Positions 2,749 through 64,000 are shown, counted from the first letter of the stretch. The stretch: 64,000 nucleotides of DNA from IMGVR_UViG_3300030098_004828:1-64000, one strand, 5' to 3'. The notes: generated by a model from the sequence alone, not told the origin. Program-made: numbers and translations.

Positions 2749-2751
2749 ATA

Positions 2752-47300: not shown

Positions 47301-49549
47301 TTGAGAATGTTCTACAAAATCTTTGTATGGAAGCTGTAACAGAAGACATATATGGTGATCCATATACTATAACTGAATATGCTTGTCCAGAAGGTTCAGT
47401 ACAAATAGGAGAAACTCAGGAAGGAATTCCTATTTGTGAATGTACACTTACAGCTGATCCTGAATATGTTGATATTATTACACCAATATCTTTAACAAAT
47501 GAAGAATACTTTACTGATATATCATGGACAGCAAGTTATGATCCAAAAGGTAAAGCATGGATATCATTCCACGATTGGCATCCAGAATTAACAGTATCTA
47601 GTTTAAATCATTTTTTAACAACTAAAACAGGAACAACTGAAGAAGTATTTTGTCCCCCTGGAACTGTACTTAATGAATATGGAGAGTGTGAATATTTAGC
47701 ATGTCCTACAGGATATATTAGTTTAGATGATAGTTCTTCTTTAACATGTTGTGCAGAATTTGTTGAACCTCCAGACGTAGAAACTATAGAAGGAAGTAGG
47801 GATGAAATTACCGCATTGGGTGTTATAAATCCCACCTTCTTAATGAGTATGGAAGATTGGAATAATATTGCCACTGATAATCCTTCGTATCCTGGAACGC
47901 CTAATTGTTATGGTTCAGGTGCCCAATTACAAGCTACTGGAAATCCTGGAATGCATATACATACTCCATTACCATGGACAAGATGTCCATTTGTTACTGA
48001 CCCTTCTGATATGAATGGTACAGGTCTTTCTATAGGGGATCTTACAGTTGATCCAACAACCAATCAGCCTGCTCTTTCACCTGATACACTTCCTACAAAC
48101 CTGTACAATTTTCCAGGGGTTCCTTGTAATCCATCAGACCCCTTTGGATTTGGGTGGATGAATGGTGTTACTTTTCCAGGTTCAAGTGGACCTACTATGA
48201 TGGGTTTTGTTCACGGTATTCAATCTGATATGAATTGGCAAGAAGGTATTTCACAACAAATGAGTGGATCTATGATGCCAAATATGCCTTATCAAGGAAC
48301 TATTGATCTTAGGAATGTTCCACCTGGTCAAGGTATGGATAGTACAGCTCGGTTATTAATTTTTGGTGGATTTAGTCAATGTTGTTATGATGAGTTATTA
48401 TGGGCATCTCCATTTATTAGTGATCAAAGTTGGACTACTTATACTATAAACTTTACTCCGCTTGCTGCATATGATCATATTCATTTTAAAGTAGAGAGTC
48501 AATATTTTAATGCACAAACTGGAGGAGTTAATTATTTACCATGGCAAGGTAATCCTAATTTTGAAATGGTTACAAGTAATCATATGAATGTTGGATTTGC
48601 CGATCCAGGGGATTTTATGAGCCAAGCTTATTTATTAGTAGATAATTTTACAGGAGTTGATCTAACTGTAGAAATCCCTGATGTAACAACATGTAATTGT
48701 CCAGATATAAATGGTATGCCATCTACAATGGTTTTAAATGATGGTTTATTTCAAACTCCTGCTGATCCTCAACAATGTATAGATGCTTGGGAAGAGGATG
48801 GAACTTACGCAGTAATGTGTGTAGTAACAGATTGTGTAGATCCAATTACAATTACTACAGAACCTTCTAATCAAGTAGGTGGAATATGGAGACATAATGA
48901 TCGTTGTGATTTATTTGCTAATTATTATGCAAAACAATATCCTTGGGAAGTTGAACTTGTAGAATCTGTAGGTCAAACAATTGATGTATTAAGAAGTGTT
49001 GAATATCAATTAGAATCCTATGTATATATACAAAATACAGATCTTGATACAGGAGAAATATTAAATCTTAGTTGTGAAGATAGATGGCATGATTTGGAAT
49101 ATAATTTTAATGAGGCTATTATTTATAATACAGAACAAATTTCAGGATTATTAAAAATGGAATTAACTCCAGCTGAAATGAATAATGTTCCATTAATTAC
49201 AGAATATCCAATAGTTAATGCTGCTGATATAGAAATATTATATAGTAAAGTAGAACAGAAATATAGATTTAATCAATTCTGGGATATAACTGCAGATAGA
49301 ACAGCTATAGTATCACAGTTTATTACACAATTAAATGGTTATATTAAAGAACTTAATGAAGATAATTTAAATTATAATAAACCACAATTACAACGTAAAA
49401 GGTTTAGACATTATTGGAATAGAGTTATATTAAGAAGACAACCTGTTGTTAGTTATTATGATGATGAAGGGGAACCAGTATATGTTCCAGAGGATAGAAA
49501 AATGTTACTTAAAATAGTTAATACTAAATTAAATCAATCAGTTAGATAA
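41363..49549 (+). CDS. Tail stabilisation/muzzle protein with vWA and jelly-roll insertions
   Basis: KGMHKD..P, FMRDEQYAF, PIRHHKMP, WISFHDWHP motifs typical of crAss-like tail stabilisation proteins; MIDAS DASSS at 46292. Confidence 0.75.
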   Translation: MAKKQQQQNTPLQNTSNVDTDLFNKGMHKDPNPSFQGRDGFYSHARNAINNSKEGDVNVLGNEPANYLCAEIPYTIIGFIHLTGDNWIVFSTDNSNSVIGRFDDSKCHYEQIVNDPCLSFNTSHLVTGASKEMFDCSWQVYWDDGLNPSRTLNLDDIPYVQIQTTGPLIDGTPCVTYIDAQPLQLDCERLRLHPLMQTPCVTLTKSDTGGLLGNGTYQAFVCYTMNGEKIGDYLGVSNVQSLWDHADTTGALDITITNLDTQFDFFKLVIMSNIKGNIVAKEIGEYSTQQSFISISVISHELISIPTSDIIRRSITFERSDNMYVVNDYLIRSGPTTNFDFNYQPLANQIQTHWVSTAYPADYYNNGGNKTSFMRDEQYAFFIRFIYNTGEKSHSYHIPGRPNGGYAINPINDNTLTGFDAINDINTDNVAWRIRNTAVDASGTLGGIGVILPDGGRVIGKGYMGYWESTELYPSTDPAGRWNSNTGDPNYNLCGTPIRHHKMPDEQTSAVCHLNGQSGTNLEIHLLGVEFVNIQAPVDNDGNFIQNIVGYEILVGSRQGNKSIIAKGLMRNMRRYTLPQADDSRSAAGSVVTAGSAFAEGAPIIHSGVNSGLMPNYPFNDCDRNDPFLRDTQGSGNLYQGGLMTPSIFSADWSGGDTYPLGFTFHSPDTMFKKIYLNPSEVYSYGMRQGQSIGKFKKSERHPGHKLLRDISAFVAALIGTGYAIEQSRGKKTKKVTGAKAMSIGKSGGPWSDNTSGGTFTTNAYTITGGGYTISVAPPALVPTGPITVGAGGGVTTNDNTTDSEVPTANVNPVTGQPYSTGDAPSQDGTVVGNASAGQGIAEQNLVAYENSAGVPLNSGTPWVAGSDTGTPPAPTDPLFADLVSTTIPTTGPGMQNTVDNSENSYALNHGLQSISTTSISTPNQQELRYFRSVRQMHVDALRDTSSYIGPGEEITHEGSRYKSLPGLGQILLKMYQTMNMIALGGQEIIDLIYNLASYQDYAWKYNAHGFYNNVLSPYNNNSQVHRQNVQKARYLSNTIQNITSGIRVNNLHRPKTVAVLTNPITLPVEATVFSIPTSNQDNSRVNLGALTGNPTAYFVRDICAHYVGLKVDFRNQYGQLDGIKQIPAENCTQLFLDNNPMGTTPDVNSVFTSDIIFGGEMYINRYTEKVIMPFFYDYLAEDQPDGTPFDYRLRQNIPSPEYWAFFANYDLSGLVSPVTDLTFNWTGVGGTVPGLPSQFHNLDFPGDDMSTFGGILSALVGNGRGLFVLKEGAVYLHNSGINDFFVESEINVAQRDWKENRGERHYDWLEYTDFDELFHVDSIKDGNFYMYDESLTKAKLSTQLVSWGTIQDLIYDPLIAETCYDYYPKRLIYSLQAQKESKEDFWRIFLPFNYKDFKNPAVVMKPISKNGAMVFYPNLSPTVFQGVDQLTTDMESKITIGDGGLFSQPFQNVVNSDLPHEYGSCESARSVINTPSGLFYISQEQGKIFHYAGQLINIADAGLKHWFNEYLPSRLLNAFPEIENYPEFYDNPVTGIGCQSVYDPKYDLVYFCKKDYEPVPDPDSCIQFDTESGGFIINETECYGTDQDILCPIGYTLEDGVCVLTTECAPDSWDRTMPGEFIETVTRWVPADRCEMDVVFVIDASSSVINNCNTDRAKLMLDSFLNGMQAGMDAGDIQVGMITFNFAANTLPQIGNMDTTNCPDCLSDVLSWNWATAPVQQPDCYGAETMSDYADAKVQCCFTWPLQQTTSVDNVQSFIDNYYCSMGEGDIWNDPAPCNICANLKCTNVIDATWHGMEMLYDPNFARQGVPKKLIVIKDGFHNISPFYPLNTFMTAEGWPNSAYGNLSGGYNEPLWTNHINNTGSSASPATPDYTWDNGTGGNVNYPDYLIEPGTYAVSTTPFAATDQWTAWLNTNIIQNAQYLDPTVGVLEMINLMLYNGVYNATADQYNANTNTNPGLALGNYYSDFTSSTAINDMVENVLQNLCMEAVTEDIYGDPYTITEYACPEGSVQIGETQEGIPICECTLTADPEYVDIITPISLTNEEYFTDISWTASYDPKGKAWISFHDWHPELTVSSLNHFLTTKTGTTEEVFCPPGTVLNEYGECEYLACPTGYISLDDSSSLTCCAEFVEPPDVETIEGSRDEITALGVINPTFLMSMEDWNNIATDNPSYPGTPNCYGSGAQLQATGNPGMHIHTPLPWTRCPFVTDPSDMNGTGLSIGDLTVDPTTNQPALSPDTLPTNLYNFPGVPCNPSDPFGFGWMNGVTFPGSSGPTMMGFVHGIQSDMNWQEGISQQMSGSMMPNMPYQGTIDLRNVPPGQGMDSTARLLIFGGFSQCCYDELLWASPFISDQSWTTYTINFTPLAAYDHIHFKVESQYFNAQTGGVNYLPWQGNPNFEMVTSNHMNVGFADPGDFMSQAYLLVDNFTGVDLTVEIPDVTTCNCPDINGMPSTMVLNDGLFQTPADPQQCIDAWEEDGTYAVMCVVTDCVDPITITTEPSNQVGGIWRHNDRCDLFANYYAKQYPWEVELVESVGQTIDVLRSVEYQLESYVYIQNTDLDTGEILNLSCEDRWHDLEYNFNEAIIYNTEQISGLLKMELTPAEMNNVPLITEYPIVNAADIEILYSKVEQKYRFNQFWDITADRTAIVSQFITQLNGYIKELNEDNLNYNKPQLQRKRFRHYWNRVILRRQPVVSYYDDEGEPVYVPEDRKMLLKIVNTKLNQSVR

Positions 49550-52500
49550 TGAAGTATAGTAAAGACGGATATAAAAGAAATAGTAAGGATAAAAATAATC
49601 CTTATAATATAATACCCTCTGGTAATATTACTATGGAGGGTGTTGACTTTCCTGTATATGGTGTTGATAATTTAGGTAATAGTCAAGTTATGATGCCAGG
49701 TGCTAACTATACATTTCCAGGCAATGAAGTATTTGAAGTCCCTTTAGTACAATTGCAAAAAGGTGGTGAACCCCCATATAAAACTACAGACAATGAAGGT
49801 AATGATTGGGTAATTATTGGAGATCATAAAATATCTGCTGATCATGTAGAGTTATTAGAGGATGGCACTTTGTCTTGGCATGATGTATCAGTATTAAATC
49901 AACTTATAAAAACAGATCCAAATTATAGTATAGATAATAATGGAAATTTTAAATATAAAGGTGAACAAGGAGAAATGTCATTTAAAACACATTTCAGTAG
50001 AAAGTCTAATCCTTTTGTACAATTTTGGGAAAGAAGAAATGTAGATCTTCCAAGAACTTTTATGGATGTAGAAGGTAAGACTATGGAAGAAAAATTTGAA
50101 AATATAGCTCAATTATATGTTGATATGTTTCATCAAATGAAAACAAAAGAATGGGAAGTAGGAGAAGAAGAAGGAGTAAATTGGGATCAAGGAACTGTAA
50201 GTAGTAAAAATGATTTATCTAACTTGACAGATCGTGGTTATCATTTTATGGATGATGAAATAGTAAGTACAGGAGTTGTAGGAAAATTTGATGATTTTTT
50301 TAGAGGTAATTTTAATATCTCAGTAACAGGAGGATTAAAACAAAATGATTTAAAAGAGGCAGTTAAAAAGTTTTTAAGAGATGAATATTTTAAACAAGAC
50401 AAAGAAGAAAGAACAAATTTAGAGTATGAAATACAATATCCATATATAAATGATTTAACAATTACTAAATTAACTGATGTAGAAAAAAGTGGAGAAGCTA
50501 TTAAAGAACATTTTGAAAATGTAAAAGGTAATAAATATCTTGAGCATGAATTAGAAGATTATATAGATGAAGTAAAAAGAACACAAGTTATAACAGGATT
50601 TAAAGCAGTTCATTGGGGACCTGGAAATTCAGAATTAAAATGGGATTCAGGATGGGTTGGTCCTATTGGTACAAATAATACAGATGAAGAAAGCAATAAA
50701 AAAGAAGTTCTTGAATGGTTTGATAATTTAGAACCTAATGAAAAAGAAAACATTGTTGGAGCAATGCCTAATATTAATTTTAATGAAGATTATGATAAAG
50801 ATGATTTCTATAGAGAACTGATATATACACTTCAATTTAATGATCCAGCTGTTTCATCTAGTAGGAATTCTTGGAGAGATAAATTTCCGGCACATCTTTT
50901 ACCACCAGGTTTATCAAATTTACATGATTGGAGTGAAGTAGTAAATGCCAATGAGAATATAGATTGGTTACCAGGTAGTGATATGAGTCATGGATCTAAA
51001 AATCCATATGATGTAAATAGAGGTTATTTGACTGATGATTTTAAACAGACTTTACGTACTGATGAAATGGCAGATACAATTTTTCCGGGACATGGAATTA
51101 GTAATCACTATATGGAGGATACTAGTACTCCAGGATTTGATAATACAATTAAAGGTCATACTATAAATTGGGGAGAAATTGAAAGAGGAAATACAGGTGG
51201 TTGGGGAAGTGTAAGATTAGGTACAAACATATGGCCAAAAAAAGAAGAAAATCCTGAAGTTTGGGGACAGACCCATGATTACTTTAAACAAAACTATCCT
51301 TTTAGATATACACAATTTAAACTTAAATACGGAGATCCTTTAAAAGGAGATAGTAGTGAATGGGAAAAAGCAGTTGAAGATTTTTTAATTGATAAAGAAG
51401 GAGGATATAATAGCCCATGGTTTAATAGAGTTGATGAAGTAACTACAGGAGGACACTATAGTCAAGAAGGGTCTAAAGGAGTTTGTGCAGAAGGATATAT
51501 ACAACAATGGGATGCTTACGGAAATAGATGGATTTGTGTTGAACAAAAAGTTTTTAAAAATGAATCATCTGGATTTGCACAAGATAAACCTATAACATTA
51601 GAAACTAAAAATATAGATTTACTACCTACTTTTATACCAGAATTACCAGCATTTACTAAACAAAATGTTAATGTTTCAGAAACAAATGAAGAAACTAATT
51701 ATCCTAAATATTTAAAATTTAATGATAATTGGGAAAAACAATTAAAACGGTTAGGTATTTGGGATGAAAGAATACAAAAGAAAGTTAATAGACTTAATAC
51801 ACATCCTAGTGCAAGATTTAAAAATGTAGATCATAGTGATTTAAAAACTGAATCAAGTAGTAATGTTTTTGGTATTAAAGATTGGAATACTGGACGTTTA
51901 TTACAAGATGGAGATATAAGTTCTGGTAGTCTTTATTGGACTGAAGGTTTAGGTGATAGATGGTATGAAAGATATTTAAGAAAATTAAATAAAGAAGAAA
52001 ATAGAAAAAATAAATGGAGAAGACAGTCTTCAGGTGTTACAACTTATAAAGATGATTTTAAAGGTTGGGATACATTCACTATGGATTTATATAATAAAGG
52101 AAATCAAACATTTTTTCATCCAGGAGAATTAACAGAAGAAGATTATATCAAATACCTTCAAAGTCATGGAGTAAATGATTTGATAATTAATAAAATATTA
52201 AATCATACAGAAACTTTTAGTGATTCTGAAATTCAAAAAATAATAGATCAAGATCCCGTTATTATGGAAAAATTAAATACATCTGGTGAGCCTGGAGATA
52301 GAGAGGTACCAAAAACTTTACAAGATTATAGAGATAGATTTGGAGTTGAAAATTATAAATATGGAGGCTTTTTACGTAAAGGACAAGATGGGACTAATAC
52401 TGATGATGATGTTGTATTAGATACTGTAGATTTAACTGGTGACAAGGTAGAACAAACATATTATCCTGATTATGACTTTTATGATATATCAGGAGAAAAA

Positions 52501-55500
52501 CAAAAGTTAATAGAAAAATTACAAACGGATGCTTTTAAAGATAGGTATTATAAACATTATGAAAATCTTACTGGCAAACAAATGACTGATGAAGAATACA
52601 ATCAAAGACTTGCAGATCAAATAGCTTTTATACAAGGAGGTTCAGATCAAGCAACACCTATAATGTATACTAGAAATGAAGAAGGTAATATAGATGTTTT
52701 TGAAGAAGGGAAAGGTGGAAAAACTATATATGGACATATGAGTCCTACTTTTTTAAAAGACTATTTTAATACAAGTAGAGGTCATGTACAATATTTATTT
52801 GAAAGAGATGAAAATAATAATATAATAGAAGATGAAAATGGTAATCCAATTATAACTGGTTGGGAAATGTCATTACCAGGAGCAAAAGAATATGAGGCTA
52901 TGGAATGGATGACTGGTCCAGATGGATATTCACAATTTTCTGGTCCTGATGGTGTACATCCTCTTGCTCATTCAACTATGCAACATGAAATTTCTCATTT
53001 ATATAATGCTCCAAATTCACCCTTATGGAGAGGAATAGATGAATATAATGATAGTAATCCTCTTACTGGTGAAATATTTGGTGATCATCAACCATGGTAT
53101 GCTGATGATCATACAAGAGCTATAGAAGAAATTGGTGCAGGTAGAACTATGTTTGAACAAGCTTTAAAAGATTATGGAATATGGGATTCTAATAAAGGAG
53201 AATTTAAAGATAGACATTTAAAAAAATTAGAAAGAGCTATAGCAAAAAATGATGACTTTATAAGAGATCCTCGTGTTGGTAATTATCTTTTTATAAATGC
53301 TAATACAGATCAAGGTATTACAACCCAAAGAACAGAAGTAAATGAATATTTAGAATCATTAGGTTTAGCAAATCCAACTGATTGGTATTTATCTGATTAT
53401 GGAACTGGAATTACTAATCAAATAAGTCCAAGACTAATGCAGTCTGATTTAACTAATAGTTTAAATATAATTAATAGATATGAATCAAAGTATCCTAGTA
53501 TACCTTCAAGAGAAGAAAAAAGAAAAAGGGATTATGATGGAAGTTGGTGGAGAAATGTAAAAAGAATGGAAAAAGAAGATCATAAAATGATGAAAAATTT
53601 TATGTCTGATAAGTTTGATATAACAGAAATACAAGATCCTAATTATGATATTATATATGATTTAAAAGGATCATTTATTGATGAGTATATGCAAAGGGGT
53701 AATATAGAAAAATTAGGAGTTTATGAAGGAAAAGTAGATGGATTAGCAGAATATTTTACAACTGGTGATACATTTGATTATAATCATCCAGGCTTTAAAG
53801 AAATGCCAGATGAGTTTAGAAAAAAATATGAAGTAAAATTTAATGAATTATTATCAGAAGATAATAGAAATAATTTAATTGATATACTTAATAGAACTTC
53901 AAAAGGGTGGAATTATCAACAAGGTAATTTATGGGATGACGAAAAAGAAGTAAGGATACCCTATACTGCACAACAACTTACAGACGAAGATATAATTTTT
54001 TATAAAGATTTTGAAAAGCAATATCAACAATTGTCTAATCAAATTCAACAAGAAATATATGAATATCATAAACATAAAATAGATCAAGGAGGTAAAAATG
54101 TTAAAAAGTATCTTAACGAATGGGCAATGGATAATGACGTTGATGAAACAGTTACAGCAAAAGATGGAAAAGAAATTAATAATTTAAGTCAAAGAATTGC
54201 TAATAATTTAAAATATAATGAACAAAATGATTTTGATTATTTTGGTATTATTAATACTGACAATAAATTAGCTAAAGCAGATGCTGGAAAAGAAATATCA
54301 AATATAATTACAGGTCTTGCAGAGTTTAAAAATGGAGGTGATATAGGAAAAAGTTTTTTAAATTTTGGTAATAAGTTTGGAGAAGAGAATGTACATATCT
54401 TAATGAATCATTTAAAACATAATAATAAAACTAAAAATTTAAAAAAATTACAAGATGGTGGTGATTATATGAAGTTTATTACAGATATGATGAACAACCC
54501 AAATGCTTTCAAAGAAAGATTAAAAAATATAACACCAATTGGATATGATGTTAAACACGCTTTTAATGAAGTAGTTGCCAACAAAAAACTTCCTACATAT
54601 TGGGATGGTAAGCCTCAAACTTGGGAAACATGGGGTGAAAATTTAACATTTATAAATGAGGATGGCGAAGAAGTTTCTGCATATACAAAAGAAAATTTAG
54701 AACTAATAAAGAATACTTCTACAGATGCTTGGCATCTTTATTTAGGATACAAACCAGAAAATAAAACAATGTCTAAATCAGTTTTTAAACCTACTGTAGA
54801 TGTTGATAATCCAAATGCAACATATTATTCTTTTAATAATCCTTTAGATATATGGGGTGACATCAAACATTCTGGTATATTAGACTATGGTGAAGAAGAT
54901 TTTAAAAATTTTTGGGAAGAATCTAATAAAAATAAAAGAGTACCTAAAGGTTATTATAATACTGCAAAATTTGAAAATAAAAGTAAAGGAGAAAAAGAAG
55001 AATTAAATCAGTATATTCAAGTATTAGATTCTTCTGCAGGAGGTTTTGCACTTAAAGATTATCAACTATCTAAAGGTTATGATGAAGAAATTGGATTACC
55101 TTATATAGCTTATTATGATATTTTTGATTTTGATATACCTTTAGCAGGAAGATCAATTAAAGGGAGCAAAGTAGCAGGCAATCCTTATGAAATTTATGGA
55201 AGATTATATTATGATGCAAACTATACTGATGAAGATGGAGATCCTTTTTTAATACCACAAGAATTTATAGGAAGCTATAATATAGACTTTAATGATTTTG
55301 AAAAAGGAATTAGATGGGCTGAAAGTAAAAACGGTATTCTTATGGAAAATCCAAATTCATCTGCAACAGGATTATATCAACAGTTATATGATCAAATTAA
55401 AGAAGAGTATGGAGGCACTAGAGAACAATTTAAAAATGATCTTGCAGCACAAGAGTTTTTCTTTAAGAGAAGGCAAGATGGTGACTTAAGAAAATGTTGT

Positions 55501-58500
55501 GGTGTTAATTCTGATATGAAAGATGGTATGGATTTGTGGCATGAGTTTTTTAATATCTTTCAAGAACATGGAAAAGGTATGCCACTAACTCCTATAGAGG
55601 TAGCATCTTTAGTTTATTTCCAAGGTAAAAGTGGTGCAAGACGTTATATTAAAGGTTCACTATTAGAAGAGTTACCTTTAAGTGATGTAATACCAGAAAA
55701 CATTTCTGCTATTAATAAAAATCCTACAGAATATTTAGAAGAAACTCAGTCAGGTATTAGAAAATATAAAACAGGAGGTGAAACTGGAAAAACAGAAAGA
55801 GAAAATATATATGAAGCTTTACAAAAATACGAATCTAATCAACAGGTTGATAAATCTATGTATGAAAAATTATTAAGATTAGGTCTTGTAGGTAAAACAA
55901 ATAAAGAAAAAGAAGAGGAAAAAATACAAAAACAAAAATTAAAACAAGATCAAAAAAAGAAAGAAGAAAAAGAAAAATTAAGTTTAACTAGTCTTTGGAA
56001 AGAATTTATACTTGGGGGTAAGGAAGATAAAAAGAATAAAAAAAAGAAAAGAGAAGATATAGGATATTCACCTATTAAGATAGAAATGGATGTAACAACA
56101 GATTTGGCTAATAAAATTCAAAATGAAGAATATTTAAAAGCTGCTAAAACATTTAATCAATCATTACAAGATAATAAAAGTCAAATAATGAAAGCCACTA
56201 ATATTGATGATGCAAATTATAATCATATAATAACATTAGCTCAAGATATGTTTGGTGAACAGCAAAATAATTCTGGTATGTATAATATTACATATGAAGG
56301 ATTATCTTCTGATGAAAAAGGAATATTAAAAAGTTTAGGTGTTATTTCAAATGAAGATTTTTCTAATCCATATAAAGCAGGTATAGCTTATGCAACAGTA
56401 CTGGCACTTAAATCTAAACTTAAACTTTCTATGGGAGGAAGCTTGCCTATGCCTTCTTCTTATTCTAAGCTATCAAAATTATATTCTGCAGATCTTGGAA
56501 CTGAAATAACTGATATAAATGATAAGATAAGACTTTATGATGAATATGTAAATGGTAAATTTGATGATCATACTAATAAAGATAGTATGGAAAAATTATA
56601 TGATAAATTTAATAGACAATATTATTATTCAGCAAAAGATTCTGATATGCCTATATATGATTTTATGAAGAAAACTTCTGATGAATTAGTTAAAGCACAG
56701 GATGGTAAAAATGATATAGATAAAGTAACAGGTAAAACTAAAAGAGAAATAAAAAGTCAATTGAAAGATGAAGGGTGGAATAGGAGGCAAAGGCGACAAA
56801 TAATAAATAATACAGATGCTGAGGATTTATATGAAAGAGATGTAGATGGTAATGTCAAATTAGTTGATTATTATAGTAGAGATTATAGAAATGCATATTA
56901 TGCAAGAAATGAGGATGGAGATCTTGGTTATAGTGGTGCTATAGCTACATGGGATGACACTCTGAAGGATGGAAAAGGTGATTGGATGCGTTGGTTACCA
57001 ACAGTTAATCTTTATGCAAATTCTCCGGAAACAGATTGGATAGAAAACAAAAAAAATAATCAAAGTTGGTTTGCTAAATTTATAGGTAGAGATCCAGGTA
57101 AAGATTGGATGGGTATAGAGTGGGAAAGATCTATGCAAAATCCTTATTATAATAAACGGATGTATGAGACCAATCCAGTTGCAAAAGCTGTGATGGATGC
57201 AACAGGTAATCAACCTGGAAGTGCTCCTTTTGGATATGATAGTTGGATGGGTCTTATGGGTGATACTCCATATACATTATTAGGAATACCAGCAGCTTCA
57301 ACAATAGGTGCATACGGACCAACAGTAGGTGCTCCTATACTTAATACTGCTGATGATTTTGCAATGTGGTTAAACAGAGGTCCTGTTGGACAAAATATTT
57401 CAAGATTGTGGAATTATAATCCTAGTAAAATTTCAGGAACTAGTGGGCTACTTGGAGGTCCACAATATAAAATTCCAGGATTAACTTTAGGAAATACTAT
57501 TAATTCAGGTTTTGCTGCTCACGGTGTTACTAATATAGGACCTAATATATATGATTTCTCACAAGATCCATCATGGGGTGGTGCAGGTAATGTTGGAATA
57601 AATCTTCTAGAAATGTCACCTTTATACGGACCTACATGGAATTATCTTAAATCAGGAACTAGTTATCTTGGCAGTAAAATGCCAAATTTTAGAGGAACAC
57701 CAGTTGGTGGTACAACTGCATCAAATAGACCTGCGCGAGTTGTAAGTCCTGAAGCAAATGTAGAATATCAAAAACATTTACAATATTTAAAAGATAATAA
57801 TGTTGTACAATCACCTTATTTACAAGATGCAATAGATGGATCTAGTTCAGTATTTTTAAAACAAGGGGATAGAGTTGGGTATTTAACTATTTCAAAATTA
57901 GATGATGGAACTTATGTTTATAAAAATCATGCTTCTGCTACTGCAGGTAAACCACAAATAGATCCTAAAATATTACAACAAGCTGAAGATATAGAACTTA
58001 AAATTAATGAATTAAGAAAAATTAGAGAAATTGTAAATAAAAATTATTTTGGAGTAGATGATGCTGTTTCAATGAAAGAAAAAGTAAACTTAAAAAATCA
58101 AGCTAGTAAACTTTCTTTTGAAACAACTGGATATAAAAGTGTTGATGAAGTTGATAATGCTATAAATAGTCTTATTAATGAACATAGAGCTCTTAATGTA
58201 AACTATACCGGATCTACCATAAAAGGAGCATCTGCAAACGAACCTTTGCATAGTATTCAATTAATAGATGATGTAGATTTAAATAAAATGAATGTAGAAT
58301 TAAATAGAGTTATTAATAGTATGAACTCAGAACATAACATTCAAAAAACAATGGTTAATACAGGCATGAATAGAGATCAAGTTATAAAGATGCATAATGA
58401 ATGGTTAGATGAACTAATAGGTTCTAAAACATATATAGGAGATTTTACGCATAGTAGTCCTTATTATAATTATTCTGCTATGTATTCTAGAAATATTGCT

Positions 58501-59538
58501 GGTCAACAAGGTCAATCTGCGCAAGACTTTATAAATTCACAAAAGCATGGGGGTGTTATGTTTCTTAATATTAAAGATTTTACAAGTAAAGGTCTAGATT
58601 GGAGTATGACTAAAGGTAATTTAGGTAGTATAAATCATGAATTAAGACATTTATTATCACCAGTTCAAACTCCACGTCAACTGGATCCATATCAAATTGG
58701 TAGGGTACATATAGAGGTGACAAATAAATTACGAGAATTATATACTAAAAAAGAAAATATACTAAAAGATTCAAATATTCCTGATTATATTAAAAGATCA
58801 AGAACAGGAGAGATTCAAAGACAAATAAATTATTGGTTTGGTGAAGCTGAGGCATATAAAACATTACATGGATTAGATCCTTTAGATATAAAAAGTCTTA
58901 ACGTACCTATAGATGCAAGTTTTGATGTATATAAAAATTACCCTATTTTAAGATCAAGTAAAAGGGGTATGGGTCAAGGTTCAGATCTACAATGGTACTA
59001 TAATAATCCACAGGAACAACAAGTTAGATATGGAAGATTTAGAGAAGTTCTTGAAGATTTTTATGGTTTGGGTAAAGAAAGTAAGCTAACAAAAAAACAA
59101 ATAAAAGCTGTTGGTAATGATTTGGATTATATAATGAATAATATAGATGACTATACTTCTATGAGATGGATAAAAAATATGGGATATACAGATGATGTTC
59201 TTGTAGATTATGCAAAGAGCCATCCACATCTACAATTAGATCCATCAAAAATGTCTGCAGATGATGTCTTAGAATTTATAAGAAAGAATGATGAAAAATT
59301 ATTAAAACTAGAAAACAATCCTATATTTAAGAAATGGGGAATAACAGCAGAAGAGACAGGGATGGGTGCGTATGATGATGTATTAGGATTAATTACGAAG
59401 ATTGAGAATTCAGCTGGTAAACCTTTAAGAACAGGAAGTAAAGCTTGGAGAAAAGAAGTTCTTGATTGGTTTAATAAAGCATGGGCTATAGGTCCTATTG
59501 GAATAGGTGTTGGTACAACTTTAGAACAACAAGAATAA
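49549..59538 (+). CDS. Giant multidomain internal virion/ejected cargo-type protein (2 zincin domains, lytic transglycosylase)
   Basis: HEISH 52984, HELRH 58636, AES...NPNSSATGLYQ 55318-55380, recurring GG/AQDG motifs. Confidence 0.7.
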   Translation: MKYSKDGYKRNSKDKNNPYNIIPSGNITMEGVDFPVYGVDNLGNSQVMMPGANYTFPGNEVFEVPLVQLQKGGEPPYKTTDNEGNDWVIIGDHKISADHVELLEDGTLSWHDVSVLNQLIKTDPNYSIDNNGNFKYKGEQGEMSFKTHFSRKSNPFVQFWERRNVDLPRTFMDVEGKTMEEKFENIAQLYVDMFHQMKTKEWEVGEEEGVNWDQGTVSSKNDLSNLTDRGYHFMDDEIVSTGVVGKFDDFFRGNFNISVTGGLKQNDLKEAVKKFLRDEYFKQDKEERTNLEYEIQYPYINDLTITKLTDVEKSGEAIKEHFENVKGNKYLEHELEDYIDEVKRTQVITGFKAVHWGPGNSELKWDSGWVGPIGTNNTDEESNKKEVLEWFDNLEPNEKENIVGAMPNINFNEDYDKDDFYRELIYTLQFNDPAVSSSRNSWRDKFPAHLLPPGLSNLHDWSEVVNANENIDWLPGSDMSHGSKNPYDVNRGYLTDDFKQTLRTDEMADTIFPGHGISNHYMEDTSTPGFDNTIKGHTINWGEIERGNTGGWGSVRLGTNIWPKKEENPEVWGQTHDYFKQNYPFRYTQFKLKYGDPLKGDSSEWEKAVEDFLIDKEGGYNSPWFNRVDEVTTGGHYSQEGSKGVCAEGYIQQWDAYGNRWICVEQKVFKNESSGFAQDKPITLETKNIDLLPTFIPELPAFTKQNVNVSETNEETNYPKYLKFNDNWEKQLKRLGIWDERIQKKVNRLNTHPSARFKNVDHSDLKTESSSNVFGIKDWNTGRLLQDGDISSGSLYWTEGLGDRWYERYLRKLNKEENRKNKWRRQSSGVTTYKDDFKGWDTFTMDLYNKGNQTFFHPGELTEEDYIKYLQSHGVNDLIINKILNHTETFSDSEIQKIIDQDPVIMEKLNTSGEPGDREVPKTLQDYRDRFGVENYKYGGFLRKGQDGTNTDDDVVLDTVDLTGDKVEQTYYPDYDFYDISGEKQKLIEKLQTDAFKDRYYKHYENLTGKQMTDEEYNQRLADQIAFIQGGSDQATPIMYTRNEEGNIDVFEEGKGGKTIYGHMSPTFLKDYFNTSRGHVQYLFERDENNNIIEDENGNPIITGWEMSLPGAKEYEAMEWMTGPDGYSQFSGPDGVHPLAHSTMQHEISHLYNAPNSPLWRGIDEYNDSNPLTGEIFGDHQPWYADDHTRAIEEIGAGRTMFEQALKDYGIWDSNKGEFKDRHLKKLERAIAKNDDFIRDPRVGNYLFINANTDQGITTQRTEVNEYLESLGLANPTDWYLSDYGTGITNQISPRLMQSDLTNSLNIINRYESKYPSIPSREEKRKRDYDGSWWRNVKRMEKEDHKMMKNFMSDKFDITEIQDPNYDIIYDLKGSFIDEYMQRGNIEKLGVYEGKVDGLAEYFTTGDTFDYNHPGFKEMPDEFRKKYEVKFNELLSEDNRNNLIDILNRTSKGWNYQQGNLWDDEKEVRIPYTAQQLTDEDIIFYKDFEKQYQQLSNQIQQEIYEYHKHKIDQGGKNVKKYLNEWAMDNDVDETVTAKDGKEINNLSQRIANNLKYNEQNDFDYFGIINTDNKLAKADAGKEISNIITGLAEFKNGGDIGKSFLNFGNKFGEENVHILMNHLKHNNKTKNLKKLQDGGDYMKFITDMMNNPNAFKERLKNITPIGYDVKHAFNEVVANKKLPTYWDGKPQTWETWGENLTFINEDGEEVSAYTKENLELIKNTSTDAWHLYLGYKPENKTMSKSVFKPTVDVDNPNATYYSFNNPLDIWGDIKHSGILDYGEEDFKNFWEESNKNKRVPKGYYNTAKFENKSKGEKEELNQYIQVLDSSAGGFALKDYQLSKGYDEEIGLPYIAYYDIFDFDIPLAGRSIKGSKVAGNPYEIYGRLYYDANYTDEDGDPFLIPQEFIGSYNIDFNDFEKGIRWAESKNGILMENPNSSATGLYQQLYDQIKEEYGGTREQFKNDLAAQEFFFKRRQDGDLRKCCGVNSDMKDGMDLWHEFFNIFQEHGKGMPLTPIEVASLVYFQGKSGARRYIKGSLLEELPLSDVIPENISAINKNPTEYLEETQSGIRKYKTGGETGKTERENIYEALQKYESNQQVDKSMYEKLLRLGLVGKTNKEKEEEKIQKQKLKQDQKKKEEKEKLSLTSLWKEFILGGKEDKKNKKKKREDIGYSPIKIEMDVTTDLANKIQNEEYLKAAKTFNQSLQDNKSQIMKATNIDDANYNHIITLAQDMFGEQQNNSGMYNITYEGLSSDEKGILKSLGVISNEDFSNPYKAGIAYATVLALKSKLKLSMGGSLPMPSSYSKLSKLYSADLGTEITDINDKIRLYDEYVNGKFDDHTNKDSMEKLYDKFNRQYYYSAKDSDMPIYDFMKKTSDELVKAQDGKNDIDKVTGKTKREIKSQLKDEGWNRRQRRQIINNTDAEDLYERDVDGNVKLVDYYSRDYRNAYYARNEDGDLGYSGAIATWDDTLKDGKGDWMRWLPTVNLYANSPETDWIENKKNNQSWFAKFIGRDPGKDWMGIEWERSMQNPYYNKRMYETNPVAKAVMDATGNQPGSAPFGYDSWMGLMGDTPYTLLGIPAASTIGAYGPTVGAPILNTADDFAMWLNRGPVGQNISRLWNYNPSKISGTSGLLGGPQYKIPGLTLGNTINSGFAAHGVTNIGPNIYDFSQDPSWGGAGNVGINLLEMSPLYGPTWNYLKSGTSYLGSKMPNFRGTPVGGTTASNRPARVVSPEANVEYQKHLQYLKDNNVVQSPYLQDAIDGSSSVFLKQGDRVGYLTISKLDDGTYVYKNHASATAGKPQIDPKILQQAEDIELKINELRKIREIVNKNYFGVDDAVSMKEKVNLKNQASKLSFETTGYKSVDEVDNAINSLINEHRALNVNYTGSTIKGASANEPLHSIQLIDDVDLNKMNVELNRVINSMNSEHNIQKTMVNTGMNRDQVIKMHNEWLDELIGSKTYIGDFTHSSPYYNYSAMYSRNIAGQQGQSAQDFINSQKHGGVMFLNIKDFTSKGLDWSMTKGNLGSINHELRHLLSPVQTPRQLDPYQIGRVHIEVTNKLRELYTKKENILKDSNIPDYIKRSRTGEIQRQINYWFGEAEAYKTLHGLDPLDIKSLNVPIDASFDVYKNYPILRSSKRGMGQGSDLQWYYNNPQEQQVRYGRFREVLEDFYGLGKESKLTKKQIKAVGNDLDYIMNNIDDYTSMRWIKNMGYTDDVLVDYAKSHPHLQLDPSKMSADDVLEFIRKNDEKLLKLENNPIFKKWGITAEETGMGAYDDVLGLITKIENSAGKPLRTGSKAWRKEVLDWFNKAWAIGPIGIGVGTTLEQQE

Positions 59539-59593
59539 TTTAGCTTATGTGCTTAGAATTTAGTATATTATAATATATAGTAGACTTTTTTAA

Positions 59594-62500
59594 ATGAATA
59601 AAAAATTAAGGAAATATCAAGAAGGTGGTACGGTATCAGAAAACTGTCCTGGACCAGTTCAAAATCCTGAATTGAATACTGCAAATAGAAATGAAGCAAT
59701 TTCTTCAACAAATTATAAAGTTGCAGAAGATTCTAGAAATTGTGCTGGATGCTTATTTTATGATATATCTCCAAGAATGAATTCATGTACAGGATCTAAA
59801 GGTGAAGTAGGATATTGCTGGAAAAATAAATTTGTTTGTCAAGCAGAAAATGTATGTGATATTCATAAATCAGGAGGGCCTATAGAAGAAACATCAGATT
59901 CAATTAAAGCTCAACAAGTAAGTGTTAATGAACTGGAAATGCAAAATTCTCCAGAAATGTTGCAAATGCCTGAAATGCAAATGAATCCAGACCAATATGT
60001 TAAACAATATAAAATGGGTGGTCAAATTCTTACAAAGGCACAAGATGGTTGGTCAGGTTTTCCAATACCAGAAGATACAGAGTCTACTATACAAAATCTT
60101 GGTACAGGAAATATTACTCAGAATCTTATTGAAATAATCAATGGAAATATAGAGAAAAATATATGGGATAAAAAAACATTTGATACAAATTATTGGAATA
60201 CGGATTTAGAAGGTAATCCTCGTCCCACAACTATGAGAAGTTTTAGTAGAAGGGAGCAATGGAATCAAGGAGATGATCCTCTTAATTTTAATAGAGAGTA
60301 TTTTGGATCTTTCACTCATCCTTCAGAAGGTAATCCATACGGAGATTTTTCATTTATGACACAAACAAGCTATCCTAAAGAAAGATCTAAATTAGGAAAA
60401 TTTTTTACAGGGCAAAAATATAATCCTAATAAACAAGAATTTAATCAAGAAATGATATTTGGAGCTGATGCAGCTGCAGCATATGCTGAATCATTTGAAC
60501 AAACTCATGTAACTCAAGATGCTCAAATAGATGAAGATTTATTAATTGCACAAAATTATGGATCTATGTCTCCTGAAATTACATTAACACCTAAAAAATA
60601 TGGTGGATCATTCAGAGCACAGAATGGAACTGAAACTAGTTTATTTGATTTAAATATGGATATAAAAGAAATTTATCCTGATTTAGATGAAATCATTGAA
60701 AATAAAAATTGGGATGATGAAGATATGGATTCTATATTTAGAAATTGGATTGAACAACAAAAAGAAAATATAAATTATAAAGAAAACAAAAGAGAAGGTG
60801 AATCAAGAAAAGATTTTAAAAATAGGTTAGATGATGAAGCTAGTAGATTTTATTATGCGTATCAAGGACTTGAACCACATAGAGAGAAATATTTTATAGA
60901 TAAAGGTAAAGAAAGATTAATAAATTATAGAGAAGGTGAACGAACAGAAAGAGGAGATGCTGCAAAAGAAAAAGCTATAAATTATTTTACTGAATATTTA
61001 GATTCTCCTTTATTAAAAACCAGACTTGAAAATCTTTATCCTGGAGATCCTGAAAAACAACAAGCAGTAATTGATGCTAAAAAAGAACAGCTTTCTGGTT
61101 TATTAATTGAAGAACAAGATCCTCAAGAGTGGCAAAATATGTTGGATGATCCTTTTAGTCTATTTACTACGGATTATTATGATACAGGAACTATATACAA
61201 ACCTAATAAAAATTGGGCTTCTTTTAATGATGCTCAAATGGATTATATCAAAGAAAAAGAGGGTTATGTTCATGATATATTACCGGGTAGTATTGTTAAT
61301 GAAATATCTCATGCTTTAAATGTAAACATTGGTAATGTTCCAAAGAAAGAAGTATATGATGATGAGGCTCTTTATTCACTAGGTTATCTTGGACATCATT
61401 CACCAAAAGAAGTGACTATAAATCCTAATATAGCAATGCATCCATATGAACTTGAATTAGCAGCAAATTTAAAAGAAGATGCTAATCCAAATGAACATGA
61501 TAGAGATGAACATAATGTTAAATCTGATATTGATACAATTAGATATGAGTTATATAATGCTGGTATGTATGATTTTAATGATCCTGATTTTAAATTTACA
61601 CAAGATCATATAGATCATTTACGTAACAATCCCGAGAAGTTTCATAAAAGTCAGTTAATGCTAGATATGTTTGAAGATGAAGATTTATTAAATAACTTAA
61701 ATATATTTACTGATACTTCATCAATGCCTGCTAATATATCTAAATATGGTTCAGAATTAACAAATGCGTTATATAACTATGGAGGTTCATTGCCAAAATT
61801 CCAAGGTAATAATAATAGTGAAACTGGTGATGCTAATCAAATTCCTGAAGGTTCTACTTCAGCGTTTCCACAATATCATACTCAAAGTTTATTGCCTGGT
61901 ATGTATGAGGATAATACTTATAATTTTTTAAGTCCTGAAATTAATGCAATGTTAGAAACAGATAATCAATCATCAGGAGATTTTGATGATAAATCTTTTT
62001 CTGAAGCTTTTGCAGAATATCATAAACTTCTAGGTCCTGGACAAGAATTTACTTGGCAAGGAAAAATATATAGCACAGATATGGCAGATGATGGTTCAGA
62101 ACCTTCAGAAAATAATAATGCTATTAATAATGCAGATTCTAATGCTAATGCTGATAATTCAAATATGAATGATAACAGCGACTCAGAAGAAATTCTTAAT
62201 AATGAAGAAGTAGATGAGTTTAATGAACAACCTCAATTTAAAAACAAAAAAATAAAAGATACTTTTAGAATGGATAATTCTTCTTCATTAGCATTTTTAG
62301 AAAGTAAATCATCTCCTCTTTTTTCTCTTATAGCTGCTATTGGAGATACTGTTGATTCATATAAATCAGAAAATTTTATAGATCCAGGATCTAAAGAAGA
62401 TTATGAAAAATGGTCAATAAAAAACACTACAGATAAAGCCGGTTATATAGATGAGGATGGTAATGTAATATCAGAAAAAGACTATGTAGAAGGAGAAGTT

Positions 62501-64000
62501 CTTAAAGGAATGCAAGAAAGAACTAATTTAGCTCCAGATGTATTTGGGCAAGCAGTGGGTTATGATGCTAATGCAAAAACAGTGGATTATAAAGGAGGTT
62601 CAAAACAAGGAAACTATTTAGAGTCAATGAATCCGGATGCAAATTATTTTGGATTTTCACAAGACACAGAAGGTAATTATATGTTTGAAAACAAATTAGT
62701 TACAGATAACCAAGAAGGTACAGTATATAGTCCTACAAGTCAAACAAGATATAGAAGTGATAAACTTATAACAGGATATGAAGGAGATTATTCAGATGAT
62801 TTTATTCAATATGATGCAGATGCACAAGAGTATATAGATTATTCTAATCCTGATCATGTAATTCCTGATCAAGCAGGATGGCTTACTCCTATAGCTAATC
62901 AACAGCAAAATACAAATAATCCTAATCAACCAACAGGTTCTGATGATATATTTGCTAGATATGGAGGAGGTTTACCTTTGTTTCAAGATAAAGGAGAATT
63001 TAGTATTAATGAACATGGTATAATAGATACATCTGAAATGGAAGGATATGATCCAGATGATCTATATGATTTCCTAGCAGAAAATTATGGTAAAGTAGAT
63101 ACATCTAAACAGCAACAAGCTCTTCTTACAAAATTACAATCTCCAACTTTTAGAGATAGATATGCCGCTAATATATATAATATTACAGGAGAACAATTAT
63201 CTGAAGATGAATTAACAGAAAGAATAAATGCTCAGTATGATTTTACTGCAGCAGGTGCACCATTTCATACTGTATATCCACCAGTTTCACATAGTCCAGG
63301 AGGATTTCCTTATTGGAGTACTACAAATATAAATCCATATCAGCCTAAAGATATTGCAACGATGGACTACTTCGGAACGGGTAATATGATGGATAGAATG
63401 AGGGGTAATAAGGGAATGTTTTTTACTAATAAAGAAGGATATGATATTTCTGAACTACCTATACCAGAACTTGCCCAGTATAGTTTTGTACCTGGTTTAA
63501 ATAAAACAAGACAGGTAGGATGGATGGGTGATAATCCTTGGACTTTTCGTGATGATGCTGATGATACAATTATACATGAGTATGCACATTCATATAATAC
63601 TGATGTATCTCCATTATTTGCACCTGCAGGTAAACAATATATTAATCCAGGAGTTTATTATAATGATAAAGCTGGTGAACGTTATCAAGAATGGTTAACT
63701 AATTTATTTGGTGAAGATTATTTTGATGAAACTAAAACAGATTTTATTTCACAGTGGTCTATGCAACCTCAAGAAATAAGTTCTATGAGATCAGAAAATG
63801 AAGCAGCATTATTATCCTCAGGAATTTGGGATCATAATAAAGAAAAATTTGGTGAGCAACATTTAAATGAATTGTTAGAATCAGATTTTTTATTTCCTAG
63901 AGGTCATTCAATGAAGCATTTACAAGCACTGGGATATGGTGAACTTCGTGGTATGAATAAAGATTTGAGTAAACAACAAAAAGAATATGATCTTCAATTA
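59594..64000 (+). CDS. Second giant multidomain cargo-type protein (truncated at window edge)
   Basis: Not in ORF track (no stop in window); ATG 59594 MNKKLRKYQEGG...; Cys module, NEISH 61298, HEYAH 63575, same GG motifs. Confidence 0.75.
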   Translation, partial: MNKKLRKYQEGGTVSENCPGPVQNPELNTANRNEAISSTNYKVAEDSRNCAGCLFYDISPRMNSCTGSKGEVGYCWKNKFVCQAENVCDIHKSGGPIEETSDSIKAQQVSVNELEMQNSPEMLQMPEMQMNPDQYVKQYKMGGQILTKAQDGWSGFPIPEDTESTIQNLGTGNITQNLIEIINGNIEKNIWDKKTFDTNYWNTDLEGNPRPTTMRSFSRREQWNQGDDPLNFNREYFGSFTHPSEGNPYGDFSFMTQTSYPKERSKLGKFFTGQKYNPNKQEFNQEMIFGADAAAAYAESFEQTHVTQDAQIDEDLLIAQNYGSMSPEITLTPKKYGGSFRAQNGTETSLFDLNMDIKEIYPDLDEIIENKNWDDEDMDSIFRNWIEQQKENINYKENKREGESRKDFKNRLDDEASRFYYAYQGLEPHREKYFIDKGKERLINYREGERTERGDAAKEKAINYFTEYLDSPLLKTRLENLYPGDPEKQQAVIDAKKEQLSGLLIEEQDPQEWQNMLDDPFSLFTTDYYDTGTIYKPNKNWASFNDAQMDYIKEKEGYVHDILPGSIVNEISHALNVNIGNVPKKEVYDDEALYSLGYLGHHSPKEVTINPNIAMHPYELELAANLKEDANPNEHDRDEHNVKSDIDTIRYELYNAGMYDFNDPDFKFTQDHIDHLRNNPEKFHKSQLMLDMFEDEDLLNNLNIFTDTSSMPANISKYGSELTNALYNYGGSLPKFQGNNNSETGDANQIPEGSTSAFPQYHTQSLLPGMYEDNTYNFLSPEINAMLETDNQSSGDFDDKSFSEAFAEYHKLLGPGQEFTWQGKIYSTDMADDGSEPSENNNAINNADSNANADNSNMNDNSDSEEILNNEEVDEFNEQPQFKNKKIKDTFRMDNSSSLAFLESKSSPLFSLIAAIGDTVDSYKSENFIDPGSKEDYEKWSIKNTTDKAGYIDEDGNVISEKDYVEGEVLKGMQERTNLAPDVFGQAVGYDANAKTVDYKGGSKQGNYLESMNPDANYFGFSQDTEGNYMFENKLVTDNQEGTVYSPTSQTRYRSDKLITGYEGDYSDDFIQYDADAQEYIDYSNPDHVIPDQAGWLTPIANQQQNTNNPNQPTGSDDIFARYGGGLPLFQDKGEFSINEHGIIDTSEMEGYDPDDLYDFLAENYGKVDTSKQQQALLTKLQSPTFRDRYAANIYNITGEQLSEDELTERINAQYDFTAAGAPFHTVYPPVSHSPGGFPYWSTTNINPYQPKDIATMDYFGTGNMMDRMRGNKGMFFTNKEGYDISELPIPELAQYSFVPGLNKTRQVGWMGDNPWTFRDDADDTIIHEYAHSYNTDVSPLFAPAGKQYINPGVYYNDKAGERYQEWLTNLFGEDYFDETKTDFISQWSMQPQEISSMRSENEAALLSSGIWDHNKEKFGEQHLNELLESDFLFPRGHSMKHLQALGYGELRGMNKDLSKQQKEYDLQL

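Follow-up and report, generated by a model that had tools for sequence, protein, structure and literature searches.

Two giant cargo-position proteins of a marine crAss-like phage carry putative zincin modules, one of them predicted to have lost its zinc site

Introduction

In both the gut and the sea, crAss-like phages rank with the most abundant phages, and, to our knowledge, what their ejected cargo proteins do inside the host cell is largely unknown. In PhicrAss001, the genes for the ring proteins R2 and R1 are followed by those for the muzzle (gp44), the cargo proteins C1 (gp45) and C2 (gp46), and the giants associated with RNA polymerase (Bayfield et al. 2023, PMC10172136). The two cargo proteins have masses of 91 and 60 kDa, and neither "peptidase" nor "protease" is mentioned in the text of the paper (PMC10172136). 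A second body of work concerns the polyvalent proteins of phages and plasmids, in which, according to the parts of Iyer et al. 2017 on which we draw (PMC5512222), a zincin-like peptidase is the commonest domain, occurs in one to five copies per polypeptide, and is proposed either to process the polyprotein or to attack host proteins. Here we analyze two neighboring giant genes in a stretch of 64,000 nucleotides (IMGVR_UViG_3300030098_004828:1-64000; the window), with which a 245,646-bp IMG/VR virus record begins. These genes, called gene 1 and gene 2 below, occupy the same genomic positions as those of C1 and C2 in PhicrAss001, and their products are about 4-5 times larger than gp45 and gp46.

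We propose, with a probability of roughly 0.6, that a marine crAss-like phage here encodes two giant cargo proteins of the polyvalent kind, which would be packed in the virion and ejected into the host, and that these bear five modules with a gluzincin signature, the third of which appears to have decayed.

Results

Open reading frames (ORFs) were called with genetic code 11 only. Both giant genes are certainly coding, because their frames are so long in DNA of about 30% G+C. Gene 1 carries modules 1 and 2, and gene 2 carries modules 3 and 4 and, past the end of the window, module 5 (Table 1). Scans with Pfam and PHROG of whole proteins, single modules, and overlapping pieces gave nothing above threshold, and gene 1 over its whole length matched no family of either collection; within the two window proteins, the zincin-like modules are the only parts that could be named. 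A first-pass annotation, made from the DNA alone, had listed four metallopeptidase motifs beginning at 52984, 58636, 61298, and 63575, and the codons there read exactly as it gave them. It had also taken all four modules to be paralogous. That description is supported for modules 1 and 4 and for the diverged module 3, but not for module 2, which belongs to a second family and can be aligned to the first along the HExxH helix only.

Modules 1 and 4, which lie in different genes, emerge from the comparison as true paralogues, as had been claimed: BLASTP aligns them with 26% identity over 276 residues (E 6e-14), and both fall within one family profile. In module 1, HEISH is encoded by CAT GAA ATT TCT CAT (52984-52998), and the candidate third ligand is E1194 (53128-53130); module 4 has HEYAH (63575-63589) and E1394 (63773-63775). 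Three proteins of 1,895-2,368 residues, each with further HExxH sites, were found by a word search to contain homologues of module 1 (41-62% identity), and an exhaustive profile search of 1.84 billion representative proteins brought family 1 to 47 members, all of them large proteins or fragments. In an alignment of 37 family 1 sequences, R43, H182, E183, H186, and N189 are invariant, and E248, I249, W266, and F273 are near-invariant, the distal Glu being present in at least 90%. The family signature can be written HExxHxxN ... SPL ... PxEISSxKAE ... GIWD, and the His-to-Glu spacing in the modules is 44-62 residues. When module 4 was compared with 50,697 phage records by tblastn, no match appeared, nor did PDB sequence searches with the profiles A1, A3, A6 (family 2), and A7 give one, and a scan of viral contigs with the alignment of modules 1 and 4 gave no relatives. 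Judging from these searches, family 1 is undescribed and rare.

Module 4 was modeled with AlphaFold from the 37-sequence alignment (predicted local distance difference test score, pLDDT, 81.2; predicted template modeling score, pTM, 0.84). The model runs from N-terminal helices through a small sheet to the HExxH helix (residues 176-189) and a Glu helix (246-262) that starts at E248, which we infer to be the third zinc ligand. An earlier model built from 5 sequences (pLDDT 55) was discarded as too poor. When the better model was compared with 48,161 chains by VIA-align, about 40 of the 50 best rows were, as judged by their titles, zincin-type peptidases or zincin-fold proteins. These include members of the M13, M1, M9, M30, M34 (lethal factor and PPEP), M36, M49, M2, and M4 (thermolysin) families, together with Wss1, SprT, IrrE, CapP, YbeY, and the minigluzincins. 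A shape search of the ESM Atlas gave no usable match. We read family 1 as a zincin-like fold without a close solved relative.

Module 3 departs from this pattern at two of the three putative ligands. It reads NEISH (AAT GAA ATA TCT CAT, 61298-61312), with Asn at the first His (N569), and it has a second Asn, N641 (61514-61516), at the column of the distal Glu; the motif Glu, the second His, the Asn at +7, and the invariant Arg are retained. The first-pass annotation had proposed both substitutions and the common tail from an alignment by eye, and profile comparison bears it out. In local mode, hhalign places the family 1 profile on the tail of module 3 with N641 on the Glu column (P 0.003). 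In global mode, the two are collinear through the SP..K.R block, NEISHALN on HExxHxxN, the Glu helix, and the tail (P 0.0035). When hhalign was run over every long ORF of the record, module 3 was, of the 328 windows scanned, the best outside the family. The pattern E..H..N occurs only three times in the 60,379 residues of the long ORFs, in modules 1, 3, and 4; bare HExxH occurs 11 times in the same residues and is weak evidence alone. Hidden Markov model searches within the genome left modules 2, 3, and 5 unconnected with family 1, and profile-profile comparison was needed. For module 3, a word search among giant proteins and a feature search of the ESM Atlas gave no match, and a scan of viral contigs gave no relatives. 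The tests are individually weak, but because they agree, they make a jointly convincing case that module 3 is a diverged copy of family 1.

The variation of module 3 between strains bears on its present state. Identical DNA occurs on contigs of 61-64 kb, one of them from TARA, and a variant contig (FUIF01013842.1, here L017) has 81% amino acid identity over 389 residues and likewise reads NEISHALN and N-VKS. The residues before N641 change from DEH in the window to DPY in L017, and two other runs have E639A with the N641 codon unchanged. These changes exclude the most obvious substitute ligands, and the idea that the site is completed by other residues, which had been named at the outset as the finding that would overturn the prediction, is countered by the neighboring Glu and His not being kept in L017. 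The motif blocks are identical between the window and L017, and the loop between them differs strongly; constraint on the module, as read from this pair, is weak overall and concentrated on the motif blocks. None of the 35 family 1 relatives that span the motif (modules 1 and 4 excluded) lacks HExxH, and module 3 is thus an exception in its family. Because Asn stands at two of the three ligand positions and is kept there between diverged strains, module 3 has most likely lost the ability to bind zinc and is maintained without a catalytic role.

A separate observation concerns gene 1 residues 730-740 (window 51736-51768), where LGIWDERIQKK matches the family 1 tail over 11 columns (hhalign P 0.003). 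The stretch has no HExxH upstream, and its residue in the column of the Glu is Lys. The match may be due to chance, or the stretch may be all that is left of another decayed module.

Module 2 has HELRH at 58636-58650 and E3156 at 59014-59016. The HELRH motif and the downstream YYNNPQEQQVR block recur in a module of the homologous protein P0005, and a word search with the latter module gave eleven more proteins (39-88% identity). In family 2 (12 sequences, from many samples), the motif is HEIEH, the residues H, E, H, and E are invariant, and the distal Glu (E112) follows the second His by 37 residues. HMMER (E 1.4e-7) and hhalign (P 3e-7) both match module 2 to this family. Between its HExxH helix and its Glu block, about 84 residues are inserted, which explains the gap in the hhalign path. 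An hhalign path that put HEIEH about 56 residues downstream, on a non-motif stretch, was rejected; HMMER aligns HELRH itself, and by our count by eye, 9 of the 14 residues flanking HELRH agree with family 2. Only 14-17 columns around HExxH align between family 2 and family 1 (P 0.018-0.044), and family 2 is collinear with the module 5 profile, if weakly (P 0.022). By these comparisons, module 2 stands for a second, undescribed family with the gluzincin signature, possibly a distant relative of family 1. A scan of viral contigs with module 2 gave no relatives, and its feature search of the ESM Atlas returned only unnamed viral clusters, the nearest named entry being LPD23 at 0.89.

Module 5 has HENQH at gene 2 residue 1860 (record nucleotide ~65171) and PTE at the aligned Glu column, and it has a homologue with HEIYH in the neighboring gene of a related 118.6-kb contig (28% identity, E 4e-34). 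A profile of these two sequences aligns to family 1 with an hhalign probability of 80% (P 1.4e-5), collinear from HExxH through PxE to the tail, and by this measure module 5 is a distant relative of family 1. The combination of HExxH with a distal Glu, which the first-pass annotation had called gluzincin-like, is conserved across family 1 (37 sequences) and family 2 (12 sequences). As the complete signature is kept in modules 1, 2, 4, and 5, all four most likely bind zinc.

The order of genes in and before this region, ring 2, ring 1, a muzzle-position giant, and the two cargo-position genes, is the same in two related contigs, and a large terminase, a portal, and a major head protein are encoded upstream. 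The terminase is 23-26% identical to those of crAss-like phages among the matches listed, with further matches in Bacteroides, Flavobacterium, and Cellulophaga phages. The nearest cultured relatives come from the last of these groups. A tblastn search with the N terminus of gene 1 against the 50,697 phage records found only Cellulophaga phages (phi4:1 and phi17:2; 38% identity, E 4e-4), and the best matches in a viral structure library were "structural proteins" of the Cellulophaga phages phi14:2 (probability 0.98) and phi4:1 (0.85). In phi4:1 (Lightbulbvirus Cba41), gp041 is a "tail protein" of 739 residues annotated from tandem mass spectrometry (MS/MS) of virions. Its C-terminal half matches family 1 (HELNHAMN ... 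KPEE ... GIYD; 13.5 bits; hhalign P 3e-6), and it has a second HExxH module, HEFTH, with a Glu block resembling that of family 2. The next gene encodes gp040, an MS/MS-verified "virion structural protein" whose N terminus matches that of gene 1. Because gp041 and gp040 were both verified by MS/MS, a family 1 module and the N-terminal piece exist in real virion proteins. The two phages differ in that the modules of phi4:1 lie in a separate 739-residue protein, with no linker of the kind described below nearby and no annotation as peptidases, and in that no degenerate module copy is seen in phi4:1.

In gene 1 itself, the N terminus is 62-82% identical to those of three homologues (P0005-P0007), and since these begin at the same point, they support the start site; the conserved segment is a candidate virion-anchoring piece. 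The homologues, of 1,895-2,368 residues, have this N terminus, module 1, and a mid-protein domain in common with gene 1. Injection with the DNA, which had been suggested from the first, is consistent both with the gene order of PhicrAss001 (PMC10172136) and with the presence of a homologous module in an MS/MS-verified protein of phi4:1. By analogy with these two phages, we infer that the products of genes 1 and 2 are packed in the virion and ejected into the host.

Near-identical sequence is present in marine metagenome runs from nine studies, dated 2014 to 2025, and the phage DNA is for this reason taken to be marine; blastn of 8 kb against the 50,697 phage records gave no match. The host is probably a member of the Flavobacteriia. 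The first-pass annotation had envisaged a Flavobacterium host, which holds only approximately, as the nearest cultured relatives are phages of Cellulophaga (Flavobacteriaceae) and the DNA comes from the sea. The host of phi4:1, the marine Cellulophaga baltica, is one of the Flavobacteriaceae.

The same data bear on whether the proteins are delivered at all. They might instead be expressed late and remain intracellular or purely structural, with the HExxH modules as relics or scaffolds of no catalytic use, a view to which the weak fold matches, the visible decay of module 3, and the possible relic of the tail motif at gene 1 residues 730-740 lend some color. We consider it very unlikely. All 37 family 1 sequences have HExxH and at least 90% of them the distal Glu, and both are invariant in the 12 of family 2, which is not expected of relics. 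Moreover, the genes lie within the virion module, between the muzzle-position gene and those of the downstream giants, and the phi4:1 homologues were found in virions by MS/MS.

Between the modules lies a short, highly conserved linker with the consensus KYGGSLPKAQDG, of which the two genes have, as far as they lie in the window, five clear copies (Table 1), with further copies downstream, at record nucleotides ~64406 and 66548. The copies are encoded by different codons, so that the peptide itself must be under selection. A linker lies at most 60 residues upstream of 9 of 40 family 1 modules, where 1.4 would be expected (P 8e-6). The strict 11-residue form is found in six other viral contigs (L008-L013), against about 0.006 expected by a rough estimate, and all six matches are in large ORFs, most of which have several linker copies or HExxH modules. 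The linker also recurs at module borders of cargo-block relatives from many samples, and a literature search for the string gave no hit. Possible roles are those of a site for cleavage, a peptide for docking, or a border for recombination.

A linker of this kind invites the view that the giant proteins are self-processing polyproteins, whose zincin modules cut the cargo, in the head or after ejection, at the KYGGSLPKAQDG linkers or close to them, acting in cis or in trans. Such cutting would free individual modules, and host proteins would not be the main target. Autoproteolysis is the leading published proposal for polyvalent zincin modules, as presented in the part of PMC5512222 that we use, and here it gains from the conservation of the peptide through different codons, from its enrichment at module borders (the 9 of 40 above), from its position beside HExxH modules in other viral contigs and at the bounds of the module 3 cassette in L017, and from the small syntenic proteins of a sister genome (see below), which would need no processing. 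The enrichment, however, shows that borders are marked, not that a zincin recognizes the mark. The proteins of the sister genome have linkers as well, and that genome contains neither a family 1 nor a family 2 module; gp041 of phi4:1 has two modules with no linker nearby. A short conserved site could, moreover, equally be read by a prohead protease, or serve as a docking peptide for ring or portal subunits. Prohead proteases are known in T4 and phiKZ. We therefore hold self-processing to be possible but somewhat unlikely as the main role of the modules, the reading we slightly prefer being that ejected peptidases act on the host.

Modules appear to move as cassettes between related phages. In L017 (nucleotides 1595-3870), the module 3 cassette is bounded by linkers and lies directly after a short ORF with an N terminus of the gene 1 type; the region there is broken into several shorter ORFs. 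Either this layout is real, with cassettes shuffled so as to form genes of their own, or it stems from frameshift errors, the contig being of low coverage. More speculatively, the giant cargo proteins could be mix-and-match polyproteins in which KYGGSLPKAQDG is functional punctuation, for docking or for cleavage by the resident zincin modules or another phage protease, that also bounds recombining cassettes; the string would be cut after ejection into strain-specific effectors, with module 3 as a substrate-holding or decoy subunit that serves its active paralogues. Taken as a whole, we judge this scheme unlikely.

Two further parts of gene 1 were seen. Residues 1900-2130 (window 55246-55938) form a domain that recurs, at E 1e-14 to 1e-38, in at least ten related giants. 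Residues ~2577-2780 (window ~57277-57900) form a long, Gly/Pro-rich, mildly hydrophobic stretch, with its best 19-residue Kyte-Doolittle mean, 1.04, at residue 2577; this may be a membrane-active part of an ejection protein.

Homologous giant proteins bear ART-PolyVal, SET, LysM, and SLT domains. As LysM and SLT are aimed at peptidoglycan, the modules might also be envelope-directed enzymes, which in the periplasm would cut peptidoglycan stem peptides, lipoproteins, or other envelope proteins and so open the way for an ejection channel. VgrG2b, a zincin effector of the type VI secretion system that acts in the periplasm, is among the structural matches (Z 3.2), and by eye, gene 1 residues 1900-2130 resemble lytic transglycosylase motifs (AES.NG.LM.NP.SSA.GLYQ). 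This SLT reading, however, found no support from Pfam or from PDB profiles and was set aside. Five modules of different families also exceed what penetration needs, and a further count against the envelope is that known phage peptidoglycan peptidases mostly have other folds (M15 and M23), not that of HExxH zincins. We think an envelope-directed role quite unlikely.

The 245.6-kb record consists of two collinear, related, but distinct genomes (~121-125 kb each) joined head to tail, with the junction near nucleotides 124,500-124,780. The two halves correspond ORF by ORF (25-99% amino acid identity; 70-90% nucleotide identity in conserved blocks), and the contig begins inside a gene whose full-length counterpart begins the second half. 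A genome of ~120 kb would also agree with the lengths of related contigs, 118.6 kb and 61-64 kb. Because two related genomes are joined in it, the jumbo size of the record is probably an assembly artefact, and so, probably, is its CheckV rating of "100% complete." In the sister genome, the syntenic proteins have only 791 and 838 residues and lack the modules.

Two other sites were observed elsewhere in the record. The muzzle-position giant of the sister genome (ORF 170849-183526) has HEIGHNVGTLH at residue 2123 (record nucleotide ~177215), a metzincin-type extended motif (HExxHxxGxxH) that is absent from its counterpart in the window. The downstream giants of 5,791 residues (ORF 73674-91046) and 5,461 residues (ORF 194560-210942), which occupy the position of the crassvirus RNA-polymerase-associated proteins, have in common a YHEAGH/YHEAFH site, at residue 2380 (record nucleotide ~80811) and residue 2319 (~201514), respectively. 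Pfam gave no match at this site, which may be another zincin-like module, of the kind reported as fused to N4-like virion RNA polymerases.

Table 1. Positions of the giant genes, their modules and linkers, and the neighboring tail genes (window numbering unless stated otherwise)
Feature	Position	Strand	Description
Tail ring protein 2	39785-40456	+	Pfam CrAss_Ring_2, E 7e-18, above cut-off
Tail ring protein 1	40456-41352	+	Pfam CrAss_Ring_1, E 1.5e-8, above cut-off
Muzzle-position giant	41363-49549	+	2,728 aa; PHROG virion structural protein
Gene 1 (P0001)	49549-59538	+	3,329 aa; at position of crassvirus cargo protein C1
Gene 1 conserved N-terminal segment (aa 1-77)	49549-49779	+	Common to homologues and phi4:1 gp040
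Linker KYGGFLRKGQDG	52357-52392	+	18 aa upstream of module 1
Module 1	52444-53316	+	P0001 aa 966-1256; family 1; tail GIWD; predicted active
Module 2	58426-59148	+	P0001 aa ~2960-3200; family 2 (A6 type: HEIEH ... PxEQQVR)
Gene 2 (P0054)	59594-67312 (record nucleotides; past window end at 64000)	+	2,572 aa; at position of cargo protein C2
Linker KMGGQILTKAQDG	60011-60049	+	Gene 2
Linker KYGGSFRAQNG	60596-60628	+	Upstream border of module 3 cassette; L017 homology begins here
Module 3	60956-61663	+	Gene 2 aa ~455-690; diverged family 1 copy; tail GMYD; predicted pseudo-peptidase
Linker YGGSLPKFQG	61778-61807	+	Downstream border of module 3 cassette
Linker RYGGGLPLFQDKG	62957-62995	+	13 aa upstream of module 4
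Module 4	63032-63928	+	Gene 2 aa 1147-1445; family 1; tail GIWD; predicted active
Module 5	~64661-65563 (record nucleotides; outside window)	+	Gene 2 aa 1690-1990; HENQH ... PTE ... GIYD

Discussion

In the reading that we prefer, the cargo proteins would be pushed into the host ahead of or together with the DNA, as are C1 and C2 of crassviruses. Modules 1, 2, 4, and 5 would each coordinate zinc with two His and a Glu and would hydrolyze peptide bonds, the motif Glu serving as general base, both of which are suggested by conservation and fold; module 3 would persist beside them as a non-catalytic module. The substrates would be host proteins, attacked at the start of infection. We lean slightly toward such targets because the modules are dispensable, shuffled, and different from one sister genome to the other, a pattern that suits conflict genes slightly better than it does an essential maturation enzyme; self-cutting of the giant proteins is nearly as likely. 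The anti-defence role that the first-pass annotation had raised as a possibility finds no support in these data, which would fit self-processing or envelope targets equally well, and module 3 may be a binder, as that annotation had suggested.

Several observations weigh against this proposal. First, none of the modules matches Pfam, PHROG, or PDB by sequence. Second, the zincin fold expected by the first-pass annotation is reflected in the enrichment of zincins in the hit list of the module 4 model, but the best VIA-align score is weak (Z 5.0), and Foldseek against the PDB found no match at E <=0.001. Third, between the window and L017, the ratio of nonsynonymous to synonymous substitution rates (dN/dS) in module 3 is ~0.57 at dS 0.18, a sign of weak overall constraint. 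Fourth, no sequence similarity to gp45 or gp46 of PhicrAss001 turned up, no direct comparison with them having been made. Finally, the evidence that would place the products of genes 1 and 2 in virions is indirect and consists of their genomic position and the phi4:1 homologues.

With these qualifications, two undescribed families of zincin-like modules can now be named in the crAss-like cargo block, and some 6,000 "hypothetical" residues show an interpretable modular grammar. The cultured pair of Cellulophaga baltica and phage phi4:1, with gp041 in its virions, gives a handle on the putative cargo proteases, and the conserved, apparently dead copy and the conserved linker provide handles on what such proteases would cut.

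Of the described systems, the closest is that of the zincin (MPTase) domains of polyvalent proteins. As in the domains treated in the relevant part of Iyer et al. 2017 (PMC5512222), an HExxH helix is combined with a Glu on a later helix, and multiple copies are interspersed in giant proteins; those domains, too, were tied to delivery with the virion, as is proposed here. Because relatives of our proteins carry ART-PolyVal, SET, LysM, and SLT domains, the setting appears to be the polyvalent one, and the first-pass annotation's remark that zincins are common in phage polyvalent proteins fits this published theme (PMC5512222). A conserved pseudo-peptidase copy and a conserved linker are not among the features met in that part of the work (PMC5512222). 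Nor do the modules belong to the corresponding Pfam family: PF18818 (MPTase-PolyVal; gathering score 27.5 bits) matched nothing anywhere in the 245.6-kb record, even with the threshold at E 10, and the value for one relative in family 2 was E 0.067. Since PF18818 matches nothing in the record, we regard the modules as new families of a known theme that stand outside it; the theme is known, and, by the profile searches reported here, both module families are new.

The cellular and toxin peptidases are more distant. The best matches to the module 4 model are M13 enzymes (neprilysin, PepO, and Zmp1; Z 4.7-5.0 over 166-182 aligned residues), and of M34, lethal factor scores Z 3.7 and PPEP-2 Z 3.3. 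The His-to-Glu spacing is 58 residues in neprilysin and 44 in lethal factor. At a root mean square deviation of 5-7 Å and ~10% identity, the matches to M13 and M34 indicate no family-level relation, and for the N-terminal helical part of module 4 with its invariant Arg, as for the GIWD tail, no counterpart in these families is demonstrable. A more instructive parallel is functional. The N-terminal domain of anthrax lethal factor (LF-N) is an inactive zincin fold kept as a binding module beside the active copy, and LF-N chains are among the structural matches of the module 4 model (Z 3.0-3.2). Module 3 would resemble LF-N in being a duplicated peptidase domain that lacks metal ligands and stands beside active copies, a likeness that we offer as a functional analogy only.

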